A stretch of 64,000 bases of DNA from Monocercomonoides exilis PA203 (lineage: Eukaryota > Protista > Preaxostyla), in the NCBI GenBank assembly GCA_001643675.2, contig LSRY02000064.1:248001-312000 (forward strand). Direction: 5' to 3'. This document shows positions 31,621-38,388 of this stretch, in pieces. Under the pieces are notes generated by a model. It made no database searches. It was not told the DNA's origin and saw nothing but the letters and a program-made list of their open reading frames with translations. Numbering within the stretch: the first letter of the stretch is position 1; each line of letters starts with the position of its first letter. The position numbers and the translations under genes are program-made.

Positions 31621-32228
31621 GGGTCATTTAACATTGTTCTTTTGAAGATTGTTAAACATTTCTTGAAAGAGCGACTTTTTGTTCCTGTAAATGTTCACAA
31701 AATTGTAACTTATTTATTTTCGATTTTAATTAATTCTCATAATTTTTACCATACTTTCTTTGGAAAAACATACACATAGTTTTGATAATTGTGTTATTTT
31801 TTAATTTTCAACGATAAAAATGAATGCTCAACAAATAAATAAAGAAGTATTTGACAGATGAGAAAAAAACAAACATTTTTTTAAATTTTCATAAAATATT
31901 ATGCATTTGATATGAAAAAAGTTCTCATGAAATATTTCAATAAACTTTATCATGAAACATATTTAATGGAACAATTTATCATTTTTTGTTCATCAAACTA
32001 CTAACCTGTTTGTTCTTTTCAAAAAAAAATCATATTTATTCCACAAACGAATTTTGTAAACCATAATTGTTTATTGAGATGATGCCAAATATGGTAAAAA
32101 AGCCAAAAAGGGAATTTCCAATTACATCAAAATCCAAGAACAGTATGATGAGCCTTTAGTAATTGTTGTAAACGTTATGTCTCATTAATATTTTATATAA
32201 TGTACCTATTTTTGTATTTTTGAAGAAT

Positions 32229-33890
32229 ATGTCTCTTTGCTCTGTTTATAACAAAAACGCAAAAGTTATTAAGAACATTCACGTTCCATCAGTGATTCGC
32301 TACAGTCCAATCCGTCCTGATGTTGTCAACTTTGTGCACACAAACATCACAAAGAACAGCAGACAGCCATATGGCCGTTACAACAAAGCTGGACATCAAC
32401 ATTCAGCTGAATCATGGGGTACAGGAAGAGCTGTGTCTCGTGTGCCACGTATTTCTGGCTCAGGAACTTCAAGAAACGGCCAGGGTGCGTTCGCCAACAT
32501 GACTCGTGGTGGTCGCATGTTCTCTCCACTGAAAATCTGGAGAAGATGGCACAGAATGGTTAATGTGACCCAAAAGAGATACGCCATGTGCTCTGCCATC
32601 GCTGCATCAGCAGTTCCATCTCTGGTGATGGCCCATGGTCACAGAATCGAAAAAGTTCCTGAGATCCCATTGGTTGTCTCAAACGACATTGAGCGTATCA
32701 AGAAGACAAAAGAAGCTTTGAGAATCTTGTCCATGCTGCATGCTACAAACGATATCAAGAGATCAGCAGACTCAAGAAAGATCAGAGCTGGCCAAGGAAA
32801 GATGCGTAACCGTCGCTATGTCCAGAGAAAAGGTGTTTTGATTGTTCATGCAGGCAAACAAGGTTTGTCTCGTGCATGCAGAAACATCTCTGGTGTGAAC
32901 TGCATCAACGTCTGCAGACTTAACCTCAAGGAAATGGCACCTGGTGGACATGTTGGTCGTTTTGTCATTTGGACTGAAGCAGCCTTCAGAAAATTGGACA
33001 AACTCTATGGAACTCGCCGTCGTGATGCCATGATGAAGAGAGGATATCGCCATCCCACTTCTCACATGGTCTTGACAGATCTGGACCGTATCATTCACTC
33101 TGGCTCTGTTCAGAGATATGTCCAGCCAAAGAAGCACCCACATCCTCGCATCCCAAGAAAGAGAGGAGAACTTCTTCTTGTGCGCAAAATCAGAAGAATG
33201 ACAATTTTGAACAGCAAAGTTAAGCAAGCAAGAAAAGCACGTCTTGAGAAACTGCGCTCACTTGGCAAGCTTCCAGCAAAGAAGGTGAAGGGACCAGTGA
33301 CAAAGAGAACCAATCTTGTTGATCCATGGGGAGTTCCACTGCGCAGAAAGGAGAGAAGAGTTGTCCTCAGAAAACTCAAGGCAGAAAAGAAGGCGAAGAA
33401 AGAGGCAGCCAAGAAAGCACGCTTGGACAGAATCCAGAAGGCAATTGCACGCGCAAAGGCAAAGAGAGAGGCAAATAAGAAGAAGATGGCAGAAGCAAAG
33501 AAACAGATGAAGGACAAGAAGGTCAAGCCAGTCTCAAAAGCCGAGAAACGCAAGGCAAAACAGGAAGAGAAGAAGAAGAAGATCGCCGAATTGGCAAAAG
33601 CAAAGGCTTTGAAAAAAGCAGCCACAACATCACAGAAATCAAAGAAAGCAAAGTCAGCAAAAAAGGCAAAAGCAGCCTCAAAAGCAAAGGACGCAAAGAA
33701 AGACGTCAAGAAAGTTGAGAAGAAACCAAAGACCACAACAAAGAAGGATGTCAAGAAGACCGAGAAAAAAGATGTGAAGAAGGATGCAAAGAAAGACACC
33801 AAGAAACCAGTTAACAAAGACGCCAAGAAGGATGTCAAGAAAGTCGAGAAGAAAGAAGCACCAAAAGCCAAAGCAACCCAAAAGAAGTAA
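32229..33890 (+). CDS. RPL4: 60S ribosomal protein uL4 with long Lys/Ala-rich C-terminal extension
   Basis: PIRPDVVNFVH, AGHQHSAESWGTGRAVSRVPR, RAGQGKMRNRRY and APGGHVGRFVIWTE. Confidence 0.97.
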   Translation: MSLCSVYNKNAKVIKNIHVPSVIRYSPIRPDVVNFVHTNITKNSRQPYGRYNKAGHQHSAESWGTGRAVSRVPRISGSGTSRNGQGAFANMTRGGRMFSPLKIWRRWHRMVNVTQKRYAMCSAIAASAVPSLVMAHGHRIEKVPEIPLVVSNDIERIKKTKEALRILSMLHATNDIKRSADSRKIRAGQGKMRNRRYVQRKGVLIVHAGKQGLSRACRNISGVNCINVCRLNLKEMAPGGHVGRFVIWTEAAFRKLDKLYGTRRRDAMMKRGYRHPTSHMVLTDLDRIIHSGSVQRYVQPKKHPHPRIPRKRGELLLVRKIRRMTILNSKVKQARKARLEKLRSLGKLPAKKVKGPVTKRTNLVDPWGVPLRRKERRVVLRKLKAEKKAKKEAAKKARLDRIQKAIARAKAKREANKKKMAEAKKQMKDKKVKPVSKAEKRKAKQEEKKKKIAELAKAKALKKAATTSQKSKKAKSAKKAKAASKAKDAKKDVKKVEKKPKTTTKKDVKKTEKKDVKKDAKKDTKKPVNKDAKKDVKKVEKKEAPKAKATQKK

Positions 33891-34642: not shown

Positions 34643-37350
34643 TTATGAGTCTTTATCTGGAGGGATGTAGTACTCGAAGGTTGGGACGGAGGATTTGGAA
34701 GAGAGGCTGGAGGAAGACTTTGTTGTCGATTTGGCAGAGCTTGTTATGCTTCGTTGGGTTGATCTGACTGACGATGGAGACGCGGTTGCAGGCCTTGAAG
34801 AAGGATGAGGAGATGAAGGAGAAGAAGAAGGAGGAGAAAATGGTGGGTAAGAAGATGGAGGATAAGGTGATGGAGGATAAGATGATGGAGGATAAGGTGA
34901 TGGAGGGTATGAAGATGGAGGGAAAGGTGGTTGATAAGGCGAGGAATAAGGCGGAGAATAAGGAGGATAAGAAGAAGACGGATAAGGTGGAGGGTTAGTA
35001 GATGAGGGATATGAAGATGAGGGATAAGAAGGAGGATAAGAAGGAGGATAAGAAGGAGGATAAGAGATTGGAGAAGAAGAAGGGAATGTTTGCAGAGAAG
35101 AGCTCTGATGAGAAAGTTGATGAGGCATCTGAGGAGAATGAAGACTTACGAGAGAAGAAGGACCATAGGGAGCAGCATATGTATGTTGCTGATGGGGCAA
35201 AGGAGGAAGACGAGAAGGTTGTGACGGAGGCAAAGAAAATGAATAATCAGAAGCAGAAACAGAAGCAGGAGCGGGATTATACTCAGAATAGGGCACAAAT
35301 GAATCACCTGGCAGTGCAGACGGAGTTGGGGGCTTGTCAAAGGAGAGCGGAGAAAATGCATATTGAGGCTGAGCTGCAGTTCGTTGTGCGCTCTTGCTGG
35401 GTAGCACAGTGCGGGAGATGGTTGAAGCGCTGGGGTCTGCTTGCAGCGGGATAAATGCCTTGTATTGAAGGCTGCTGGCAGAAGGGCTGAATGCACTGGA
35501 GGGAGCGGGGGAATGTGGGGGAGTGCCTGTGAGTGAAGAAGAGCGGGTGAATGAGGCATTTGTCGAGGCTGCTGCGGTTTGTGGTCTCTTTTCTGGTGCT
35601 GGTGAAGAAGGCGCTGGCTTTTGTGGGCTGCTTGCTGGAGTCCTTTGAGGAGTCTTTGGCTTTGGCTGGGGAGGCGGCGGTGGCTTTTTGATGATGTTCT
35701 TTTCTTGCAAGAATTCTAGTCATGAACATTCACGAGCATGATCATATATAAGCATTTTATTAATATCATCATCATCATCATTTTATCATAAGTTCATATA
35801 TCCAAATTCAAGCAGAAAATAAAAAAAAATCAAAGATAGGTTATAATGTTGAGCATAAACTGCGTTCATTCATAAAAAAACAAGCAATTGCCACACCAAT
35901 TATCGACGACCGCAGGCCTTTGTCGAGCACAACGTGTTTTTCAACATCCTTTTCGGTGATGGCTTCGAAGGTGTCTGGCCAATGGCCGATCTCTCGCACA
36001 AAGAGCAGAAGCTCGTCGAGATCACACACACTTCCTCCGGGTGTGCAAACAGGCTCTCTCATAATCTGAGGGTGGTGGGGTTATTAGTGGGGCATTGTCA
36101 CACAAGTTAAAAAAAGAAAGAAAGAAAGAAATTAATAAATAAATAAATACATAAATACATAAATAAGAAAATGAAAATGAATAAATTGGATGAACATTCA
36201 AATTTTTGAAATTAGAACAGAGAGAAAGATGGAAAGGAGTTTATTTAATCAGACAATTTTTCATATAAATGTAGCATAAAATATATCAAGAAATAATTAA
36301 TAAAAAAACATTATTGGTTCCAGGGAAAAAAAATATCAAACCTTACGAGAAATGCTGCATAAAAAGCCTAAATCGTCCATTTCTTGAAGTATAGAAATGT
36401 CGTTAACTTCTGGTATAACTTTTAATCTTACGTGATTATTGTTTATAGGCTTTTCTTGATGAACTGGTGCAGAAAAAGAACTTGAAGAAGCAGTTTTGTA
36501 TTTATTGAGAAGTCTCTCGGAAGAATTTGGAGCTTCCTCTACTTTGTCTTCGTAGACGTCGTCACCCTTAAGTTCTTTTGCATTTTTAGACATCAAATCA
36601 CTTCCACCTTGATCAATTATTGTGATTTTTATGTTCTCAACATCATCAATAATTACTGCTGACTGTGGTTGCGTTTCGACAATAAAAAATAGAATAATCT
36701 CATCTTTTATGCATAATGGAATTGTGCTGTACTCTGCCAGCGCATAAAAGTTTTTAAGGGCTTGCTTTATGCTTCAGAAAAAGAAGCAGATGTAAAACAC
36801 TTTTAAAAAAAAGACTTCTTTCAAACTCAGTTTCTGAAAATGTCATGTTTTGGTTTGTTTTTTCGGCAGGGGAAAAGGTTAAAGAATTTGCCTTTGGGAT
36901 GTGCTTGGCTGTTATCTTCACTATTGACTGTTCTGACAGCGAAAGATAGTTCATCATCTGTACAAATTCATTTAAAATGTGAATTTTCAAGTTTCCAAAA
37001 GATTTCATACCCAAAATGGAAGGTAAACTTCGTTAGGCTTCGCAGCAAGTCCGAGACATCCAGAGTAAACTGATTGCTTAGTCTCACAATTCTGGATTTC
37101 AAAAGATATTGTTTTGTCGTATACGAAAGGCAATAACAAATTTAATTCATCGTTTGAAGGAAGATAAACTGTTGATAAATCAAATATATATTCAAATTTA
37201 TTTCTAAATATTGATCAATATACTGCTTCCAGTTTGTTCGTTTTCATGTAAATCTACACAGGCAAAAGAAACGGCTGAATAATATCTTTCAAATTTGTCG
37301 TTATCACTTCCTTCCTGAGCTTCATCATGGGATGAACTGTTTAAGTCCAT
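34643..37350 (-). CDS. UFD1 N-terminal (UT3)-like domain + U-box + Pro/Ser/Tyr-rich tail protein, multi-exon
   Basis: Spliced translation gives FERYYSAVSF...IYLPS...SFEIQN...SVYSGCLGLAAKPNEVYLPFWMMNYLSL...QALKNFYAL...FFIVETQPQSAVII (UFD1-like). This is followed by FLCSISRKIMREPVCTPGG...WPDTFEAIT...LRSSIIEFL (U-box), then PPSY repeats. Confidence 0.8.
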
Positions 37351-37516
37351 CGATTTAGAAAAAATTATGAAAAAGGAAATTATTATATAAAACACAAAAG
37401 AAATCTCTGTCAAAAACTTGAGAAAAAAATTAAATATTAGAATAATTCGAATTAATAAAGAAATGAACAATTACTTGATCGCAAAAAAAAAATAACGCCC
37501 AATATATTTTTTGAAA

Positions 37517-38388
37517 ATGAGGTTGATCGTTCAAAAAGTTTCTCATGCATCTGTTCAAGTGGCTGATAAAATCGTTGGTTCGATCGGCAAAGGTGTAATG
37601 GTTTTGGTTGGAATTGCAGATGATGATGATGAAAAGGTTGGAAAGGAAAAATTATGAATTATATTCATTTATTTATAAGCGAATATGTTTTTAAACACAA
37701 AACATAAGGATGCGGAATACGTTTGCAAAAAGTTGCTTAAACTTAGGATTTTTGAAGACGAAGGAGCTGTTTGTTTTGAAATTTCATAAATTTTACCATT
37801 TTTTAAAAATATTTTTTCAAAGTTTTGGAAGAAATCAGTTGTTGAAATTGATGGAGAAATTCTTCTTGTATCTCAATTTACACTTTTTGCAAATTTATCG
37901 AAACGTATGTGTTTCGGATTTTTTTTCAAATAAAATTCTTATCTATCTCTTTCTAAATGAATGATTGTAAAGCAAAACCAGATTTTCACCACGCAATGGT
38001 CGCAGAGAAATCTAGACCATTTTTCAACGCTTTTGTAGATAAAGTTAGAGCGTCATATAAATCTGACAAAGTTCAAAGTTTGACAGTAATATTTGTTTAA
38101 TTTAATTTTAATAACAAACTGTTTTTCCGTATAGCTGGAGAATTTGGGGCTTTTATGGAAGTTTCCTTAACAAATATTGGACCAATTACCATTATCATAG
38201 ATTCAAAAGAAAAAAGTGGAAGCAGCAAGGCACAACCGTCTCCTCTTCCTTCTCCTGTGGCATCTGTCTGTGGGTCTCAACTTTTGAATAATAAAAAAGC
38301 TAGCGATGTTTCTTCAAACAAAAAAGATGAAACGGAAAAACCTTCATCATCTTCAACTCCTTCTGATGATGCAAAGAAAATGGATTAA
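37517..38388 (+). CDS. DTD1: D-aminoacyl-tRNA deacylase (introns 37637-37708, 37769-37822, 37905-37972, 38078-38134)
   Basis: MRLIVQKVSHASV...IGKGVMVLVGI, SQFTL, KPDFHHAM and TGEFGAFMEVSLTNIGPIT. All four splices keep frame. Confidence 0.95.

Follow-up and report, generated by a model that had tools for sequence, protein, structure and literature searches.

Does the genome of Monocercomonoides exilis PA203, a protist without a mitochondrion, encode a protein in which the UT3 head of UFD1 is joined to a U-box, and what would such a protein do? The UT3 domain of UFD1 is known almost only within the Cdc48-Ufd1-Npl4 unfoldase. A preliminary description of a 64,000-nt stretch of this genome (the window, contig C63:248001-312000, whose own positions are used below for gene parts) had proposed that small exons, once spliced, yield a UFD1-like head, a U-box and a proline-rich tail in one frame, and that the product is a self-contained reader and writer of ubiquitin chains. 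We analysed the window together with genome-wide scans covering 82,301,135 bases in 101 contigs, and the fusion gene was found on the minus strand at 37350-34643. The main evidence that the head and the U-box belong to one gene is that a single open exon encodes both the last part of the UFD1-like domain and the first U-box strand, which at the level of sequence bears out the proposed fusion.

This exon, the fourth (36342..36771), contains three successive segments. Codons 1-52 (36615..36771) encode the remainder of the N2 subdomain ('IKQALKNFYAL...IVETQPQSAVII'), codons 53-128 (36387..36614) encode an acidic, Ser-rich linker of 76 residues in which no motif was recognised, and the last 15 codons (36342..36386) encode the first U-box element ('...DDLGFLCSISRK'), with the GT donor of intron 4 coming directly after it. 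The reading frame of exon 4 contains no stop codon, whereas its two other frames contain 11 and 14. None of 5000 shuffled sequences stayed open; the 76 linker codons are likewise open in frame, as were only 0.16% of their shuffles. The N-terminal 'F-x-C-x-I' element of the U-box sits at this exon end, and in the closest U-box relatives in the genome, L013 and L009, the upstream exons end '...DNMGFRCALSRE' and '...EFLCNISRM', respectively. Comparison of the end of exon 4 with the end of the upstream exon of L013 gave a BLASTP match with E 7e-4, and both alignments finished at the exon end. Because the first element lies at the end of exon 4 and matches the exon end of the paralog, intron 4 (36066..36341, 276 nt, 24% guanine plus cytosine [G+C], GTTTGA...CCTCAG) is placed inside the U-box, which it interrupts past the first element. 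At least seven other U-box genes of the genome (L006, L007, L009 and L011-L014) break at Pfam position 11-13, as indicated by short open frames or by a stop just before the match, and in two close paralogs of the fusion gene the break falls at the identical residue, which suggests one intron position shared across an expanded U-box family.

The whole gene could be read from an ATG at 37350-37348 to a TAA at 34645-34643, so that the span flagged in the preliminary description ends exactly at a start and a stop codon. Six phase-compatible exons with a total of 2088 nt (695 codons plus the stop) are predicted, separated by introns of 55, 53, 55, 276 and 181 nt that all begin with GT and end with AG, and this model places the head, the U-box and the tail in one frame as had been proposed. 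The introns have 16-28% G+C and the exons 34-51%; for comparison, in the published Oxford Nanopore (ONT) assembly of M. exilis PA203 introns average 119 bp with 27.6% G+C, and intergenic distances average 1855 bp (PMC8767320). Exon 1 (37224..37350; 42 codons and 1 nt, phase 1) encodes an acidic N-terminus and the first N1 strand ('FERYYSAVSF...EQTGS'), exon 2 (37011..37168; 158 nt) encodes the core of the UFD1-like N1 subdomain, a putative double-psi barrel, with 'EVYLPFW' as its last residues, and exon 3 (36827..36957; 131 nt, ending in phase 2) encodes the end of N1 and the start of N2 ('MMNYLSL...'). Exon 5 (35897..36065; 169 nt) contains the body of the U-box ('IMREPVCTPGG...'), and exon 6 (34643..35715) contains its final helix ('EFLQEKN') followed by a low-complexity tail, with 356 residues in the exon before the terminal TAA. 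All three motifs quoted earlier were recovered in this model, 'EVYLPFW|MMNYLSL' across intron 2 and both 'QALKNFYAL' and 'IVETQPQSAVII' in exon 4. An alternative intron 3 of 34 nt (donor 36798, acceptor 36765) would also keep the frame and was rejected, as it breaks the match in exon length and phase to canonical UFD1. The base composition of exon 5 (G+C 0.51; G+C at third codon positions [GC3] 0.55) differs from that of exons 1-4 (G+C 0.34-0.38, GC3 0.26-0.44), as might be expected if the 5' and 3' halves had separate origins, though G+C varies among M. exilis genes in any case.

The origin of the head was traced by comparison with the UFD1 family, which was tested as Pfam PF03152 and PF24842. 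The Pfam scans were done exon by exon, so each exon carries part of a domain. Exon 2 matched UFD1_N1 with E 6.6e-4 and 19.6 bits (gathering cut-off 29; profile positions 32-76 of 97), exon 4 matched UFD1_N2 with E 4.9e-4 and 20.5 bits (gathering cut-off 37; positions 25-68 of 76), and a six-frame scan of the genome gave the same two places (exon 2, E 0.0012; N2, 22.1 bits). A separate canonical UFD1, which the preliminary description had suggested looking for, was found on contig C69 at about 1,504,000 with 44.7 and 66.1 bits, and a separate NPL4 gene is present on contig C17. Introns 1, 2 and 3 of canonical UFD1 are in phases 1, 0 and 2; the first two follow 'EQTGK' and 'PFW', and the third precedes 'LEYSLRSF' by one codon. 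Introns 1-3 of the fusion gene have the same phases, the first two following 'EQTGS' and 'PFW' and the third preceding 'IKQALKNF' by one codon. In both genes exon 2 measures 158 nt and exon 3 131 nt, and the fourth exon of both begins at UFD1_N2 profile position 24-25. BLASTP aligned exon 2 with its canonical counterpart in register (residues 18-52 on 18-52, E 7e-10) and exon 4 with the canonical exon 4 (residues 1-39 on 1-39, E 0.004), with an identity of 31-34% over these two exons; exon 3 gave no BLASTP match to the canonical exon 3, yet the two align without a gap. Since exon lengths, intron positions and phases, and BLASTP register all match canonical UFD1, the head is a diverged UFD1 paralog, derived from the duplication of a gene that already had introns, and on this point the preliminary description was right.

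The resemblance to UFD1 extends to the order of the subdomains (UFD1_N1 followed by UFD1_N2, as in a UT3-type N-terminus, whose fold combines a double-psi beta-barrel with an alpha/beta roll), to the motifs 'YLPFWMM', 'ALKNF' and 'VETQP', and to the exon-intron structure of the canonical gene in the same genome. Alignment indicated that the fold-core residues are retained in the head, namely FE, a Gly, PxW and the N2 prolines. The language-model neighbours of exon 4 were all UFD1_N2, CDC48_2 or PEX-1N clusters, which belong to one clan, and single-sequence searches of the PDB with exons 2 and 4 gave no match.

In exon 5, the Pfam U-box profile (PF04564) matched with E 0.058 and 14 bits (gathering cut-off 21.4) over positions 13-60 of 73, the first 12 positions being in exon 4, and the Pfam matches of exons 2, 4 and 5 are colinear in the order UFD1_N1, UFD1_N2 and U-box. 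The best PDB matches of exon 5 were CHIP U-boxes, with the alignment starting from residue 14 of the construct, and its language-model neighbours were all U-box clusters (score 0.92). The closest relatives within the genome are L013 on contig C20 (38% identity, BLASTP E 1e-16), which itself scores 26.9 bits and is thus above the cut-off, and L009 on contig C40 (36% identity), and a five-residue insertion is common to both and the fusion gene. At the positions of CHIP I235, H260 and P269, which we take to be contacts with the ubiquitin-conjugating enzyme (E2), alignment to CHIP and to the paralogs placed the Ile of 'CSIS', a Phe and a Pro, respectively. Ligase competence of this U-box is plausible, not assured.

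Compared with CHIP (STUB1), the fusion U-box has a similar length (about 70 residues), a similar loop ('IMREPVCTPGG' against 'LMREPCITPSG' in CHIP) and an Ile, an aromatic residue and a Pro at the E2-contact positions. Unlike CHIP, the predicted protein has no TPR domain and a UFD1-like recognition domain, its U-box is internal and not C-terminal, it carries Cys-Asp-Leu in place of Tyr-Asp-Arg, and the five-residue insertion is found only in it and the two M. exilis paralogs. We also considered whether the two closest U-box paralogs, read over the longer stretches L030 (C20:1150500-1157500, minus strand) and L031 (C40:405500-413200, plus strand), were further UFD1 fusions, and this was rejected because their N-termini share another domain, which contains 'VTILPNPP' and has no Pfam match. 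In both, this domain is followed by low-complexity sequence and then by an intron-split U-box, and they seem to form a small subfamily of M. exilis U-box genes whose recognition domains are not in Pfam. As the N-termini of the paralogs differ, the UFD1-like head is unique to this member of the subfamily.

The tail is made up of 26% Ser, 24% Pro and 7% Tyr. The 356 codons of exon 6 are open throughout; none of 3000 shuffles was fully open, and the longest shuffled frame had 320 codons. There is no Met in approximately the first 195 codons, which means that exon 6 cannot be a gene of its own and must be spliced to upstream sequence, and its junction with exon 5 is phase-compatible. A Pro/Ser/Tyr-rich tail was thus present as described, but the 'many PPSY/PPPY' motifs ascribed to it came down to four strict PPxY motifs (three PPSY and one PPPY, 34982..35059, found by regular expression) within degenerate (S)YPPS repeats. 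Shuffled tails had 1.4 +/- 1.2 such motifs and 99 of 2000 reached four (p about 0.05), and imperfect tandem repeats of 12, 15 and 30 bp span 34797-35080 and enclose all four, so these motifs come from a short tandem repeat. A motif search also found a single PPLP (35195..35206) and a run of five prolines (35669-35683). The genome encodes WW domains, one of which shares an open frame with a HECT domain at C7:683681-685533, so a Nedd4-like reader is available in the genome, but nothing ties this WW-HECT gene to the tail.

Whether the head could still read ubiquitin was judged from the residues that matter in human UFD1. In a 1.31 A structure, human UFD1-UT3 was resolved with a K48 di-ubiquitin mimic; the substitutions L53R, E84A, K139A, E143A and D186A markedly reduced unfolding, L53R, E84A and E143A also abolished binding of the mimic, and E184A had little effect (preprint 10.64898/2026.03.13.711538). 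L53, E84, K139, E143 and D186 are thus required in human UFD1 to engage the proximal ubiquitin and the unfolded initiator ubiquitin. The exons of canonical M. exilis UFD1 align to human UFD1 residues 48-97, 98-140 (ungapped) and 142-192, and this protein retains L, E, K, E, E and D at human L53, E84, K139, E143, E184 and D186. Through the in-register alignment to these canonical exons, the fusion protein was found to have G, E and K at E84, K139 and E143, and D and E at E184 and D186; the position of L53 is occupied by E, or by the adjacent L if a shift of one residue is allowed. Three important contacts, E84, K139 and E143, are therefore replaced non-conservatively in the fusion protein and kept in the canonical UFD1 of the same genome, which speaks against the 'reader' half of the proposed function. 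The E at the K139 position is encoded by codon 42 of exon 3 (36832-36834) and the K at the E143 position by codon 2 of exon 4 (36765-36767), which amounts to a reciprocal swap of charges between two positions separated by one helical turn. Such a swap could preserve an intra-helix salt bridge while inverting the polarity presented to a ligand, and a retained fold core with changed contacts fits a head that has kept its fold and altered its ligand.

The connection to p97 (Cdc48) that had been suggested was not supported either. The N2 subdomain is followed by the linker and then by the U-box, with no UT6 region and its Npl4-binding segment, and a pattern search for SHP (strict or loose), VIM and VBM motifs found none in any exon. 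With neither UT6 nor any of these motifs, the canonical route to Cdc48 and Npl4 is evidently absent, and because the UT6 and SHP features were looked for and not found, the predicted protein is not UFD1 in a functional sense. It further departs from UFD1 in its replaced contacts and in bearing a U-box and a 356-residue tail, which are in no described UFD1.

Taking these results together, we lean towards one intact gene for a 695-residue U-box ligase that is probably lineage-specific and whose UT3 head has been turned to a new use. In this reading the head is a diverged duplicate of the UT3 part of UFD1 (the N1 double-psi barrel and N2) that has kept its exon structure and fold-defining residues. 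The duplicate no longer has the C-terminal UT6 part, through which UFD1 is tied to Cdc48 and Npl4, and it has gained a U-box of the local subfamily, CHIP-like in sequence, together with the proline-rich tail. The U-box would recruit a charged E2 through the retained loop-1 Ile, helix aromatic and loop-2 Pro, and the UT3-like head would bring a client or partner, for which K48-linked or unfolded ubiquitin held in the canonical mode is an improbable candidate. The tail, with its poly-Pro run, PPLP and four PPxY motifs, may be a disordered docking or regulatory region, and WW-domain proteins, including the WW-HECT protein, could read it. Activity as a ubiquitin ligase (E3) or chain-elongation factor (E4) is something we infer from this anatomy, and the predicted protein is most aptly classed among the U-box E3 ligases, as one whose recognition head is of a new type.

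The strongest competitor is the original proposal of a self-contained E4, in which the head binds ubiquitin or a chain on a substrate, the U-box extends it and the PPxY tail couples the enzyme to Nedd4-type ligases. The UT3 of UFD1 is a ubiquitin-binding module (10.64898/2026.03.13.711538), the acidic character at E184 and D186 is kept, the N2 strand region is present, the U-box adjoins the head in the same predicted polypeptide, and a WW-HECT gene exists in the genome. However, the contacts at E84, K139 and E143 are lost here and all kept in the canonical paralog, L53 is replaced by E or preserved only with the one-residue shift, and the same preprint reports negligible binding of folded mono- and di-ubiquitin even for human UT3 (10.64898/2026.03.13.711538). 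The PPxY motifs number only four (p about 0.05 against composition) and are by-products of a repeat. We consider this proposal unlikely as a whole. A more specific version is doubtful to a slightly greater degree: the UT3 duplicate, free of Cdc48 and Npl4, might act as a substrate receptor whose N2 groove captures an exposed beta-strand, such as that of unfolded ubiquitin or a ubiquitin-like C-terminus, with altered charge rules (K139E/E143K), and the enzyme might mark or extend such clients as a single-chain reader and writer without an unfoldase.

Several results count against an intact ligase. UFD1_N1, UFD1_N2 and the U-box were matched in the expected order when the profile comparison suggested in the preliminary description was made exon by exon, but every match was under its gathering cut-off, because each scanned exon fragment holds only part of a domain. 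After the loop-1 Gly, Tyr-Asp/Glu-Arg is present in five of seven paralogs, and the remaining pair retains the Tyr. The fusion U-box has Cys-Asp-Leu at this place and is the most deviant U-box of its subfamily, which makes its ligase competence uncertain. A search with exon 4 against 1.84 billion protein representatives gave one low-complexity match and no ortholog, which says little since M. exilis records are absent from that set; the same exon had no match, and so no ortholog, among metagenome contigs, where an alignment of the U-box subfamily retrieved one spurious, high-G+C bacterial contig (L029).

Another reading is a decaying or non-catalytic duplicate: the fusion exists in the DNA, yet the U-box, the head or both are inactive, leaving a scaffold or an incipient pseudogene. 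The U-box has the weakest score in the genome and was too weak to be among the 15 candidates of the genome U-box scan, its Tyr-x-Arg is gone as are the ubiquitin-contact residues of the head, identity to canonical UFD1 is just 31-34%, and no relative was found elsewhere among protein representatives or metagenome contigs. On the other hand, the 695 codons in six exons contain no stop or frameshift, all ten splice sites are canonical and the open frames far exceed those of shuffled sequences. The fold-core residues and the putative E2-contact Ile, aromatic residue and Pro are retained as well, so we regard decay as rather improbable, and an intact ligase with a re-purposed head is still preferred. 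Least probable, and in our view quite unlikely, is a split into two or three genes or another splicing pattern (a UFD1-like gene stopping past exon 4 at '...SISRKV', a U-box gene starting from ATG 36062, or a tail-less protein ending 19 residues past the exon 5 donor), for although an ATG is the second codon of exon 5, retention of intron 4 leads to a stop right after exon 4, read-through of the exon 5 donor also terminates soon and base composition differs between exons 1-4 and exon 5, a U-box from 36062 would lack its first element, which the last codons of exon 4 supply in phase and which the upstream exons of the paralogs share. Intron 4 has 276 nt at 24% G+C, against a mean intergenic distance of 1855 bp (PMC8767320), and about the first 195 codons of exon 6 include no start codon.

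A U-box enzyme connected with the UFD pathway recalls Ufd2 (UBE4B), a chain-elongating E4 that works with Cdc48, and this likeness is conceptual, a functional analogy only. No exon gave a Pfam match to the Ufd2 core domain at E values of up to 10, and, unlike Ufd2, the predicted protein also has no Cdc48-binding element; since there is no Ufd2 core, it is not an Ufd2-type E4 as judged by domain content. A closer parallel for re-use of the head is provided by three single-exon genes of the same genome, at C51:233738-237247 (L004:1739-5248, minus strand, 1169 residues), C14:1111503-1113602 (L027:2504-4603, minus strand, 699 residues) and C69:1890142-1892262 (L028:3143-5263, plus strand, 706 residues), in which a UFD1-type N1+N2 head stands at the N-terminus of a longer protein. 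In these genes, however, the head has no introns, and its exon structure resembles that of canonical UFD1 less closely. Acidic or low-complexity stretches come after it, with Cys/His zinc-finger-like motifs (weak Di19, UBZ and C2H2 matches) in place of a U-box. The UT3 head is thus used in at least five genes of this genome, including the fusion gene and canonical UFD1.

A search of the literature library at hand found no description of UFD1 and a U-box in one protein, nor of UFD1 in Monocercomonoides, and the architecture had likewise been unfamiliar to the preliminary description. A UFD1-type head and a CHIP-like U-box are each already known separately, and it is their combination for which no description was found. 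Here the UT3 module has been duplicated without the part that binds Cdc48 and Npl4 and joined directly to a U-box predicted to recruit E2, which would make UT3 a portable recognition module for a ligase if the gene is expressed and active. The changed contacts, set beside the canonical UFD1 of the same cell, would then be a natural experiment on UT3 recognition. If the gene is not expressed or its product is inactive, the fusion would be an ordinary lineage-specific domain shuffle.

The locus is tightly bounded, with a ribosomal protein L4-like open reading frame on the plus strand ending at 33890 on the side of the lower coordinates and a plus-strand gene starting from near 37511 on the other. 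The L4-like frame (32220-33890) encodes about 553 residues with a Lys/Ala/Glu-rich C-terminal extension of roughly 190 residues, and the L4 tails known from other eukaryotes are far shorter. The divergent neighbour (37511-37657, plus strand) begins 'MKMRLIVQKVSHASVQV...GKGVMVLVGI' and by eye looks like a D-aminoacyl-tRNA deacylase. Its start codon and that of the fusion gene are about 160 bp apart, so the two genes probably share a promoter region. Elsewhere in the genome at least 20 HECT loci were matched, two of which lie at the ends of uninterrupted frames of 10,324 codons (C22:400810-401736) and 11,405 codons (C5:1558538-1559452), and these genes are predicted to encode giant HECT ligases.

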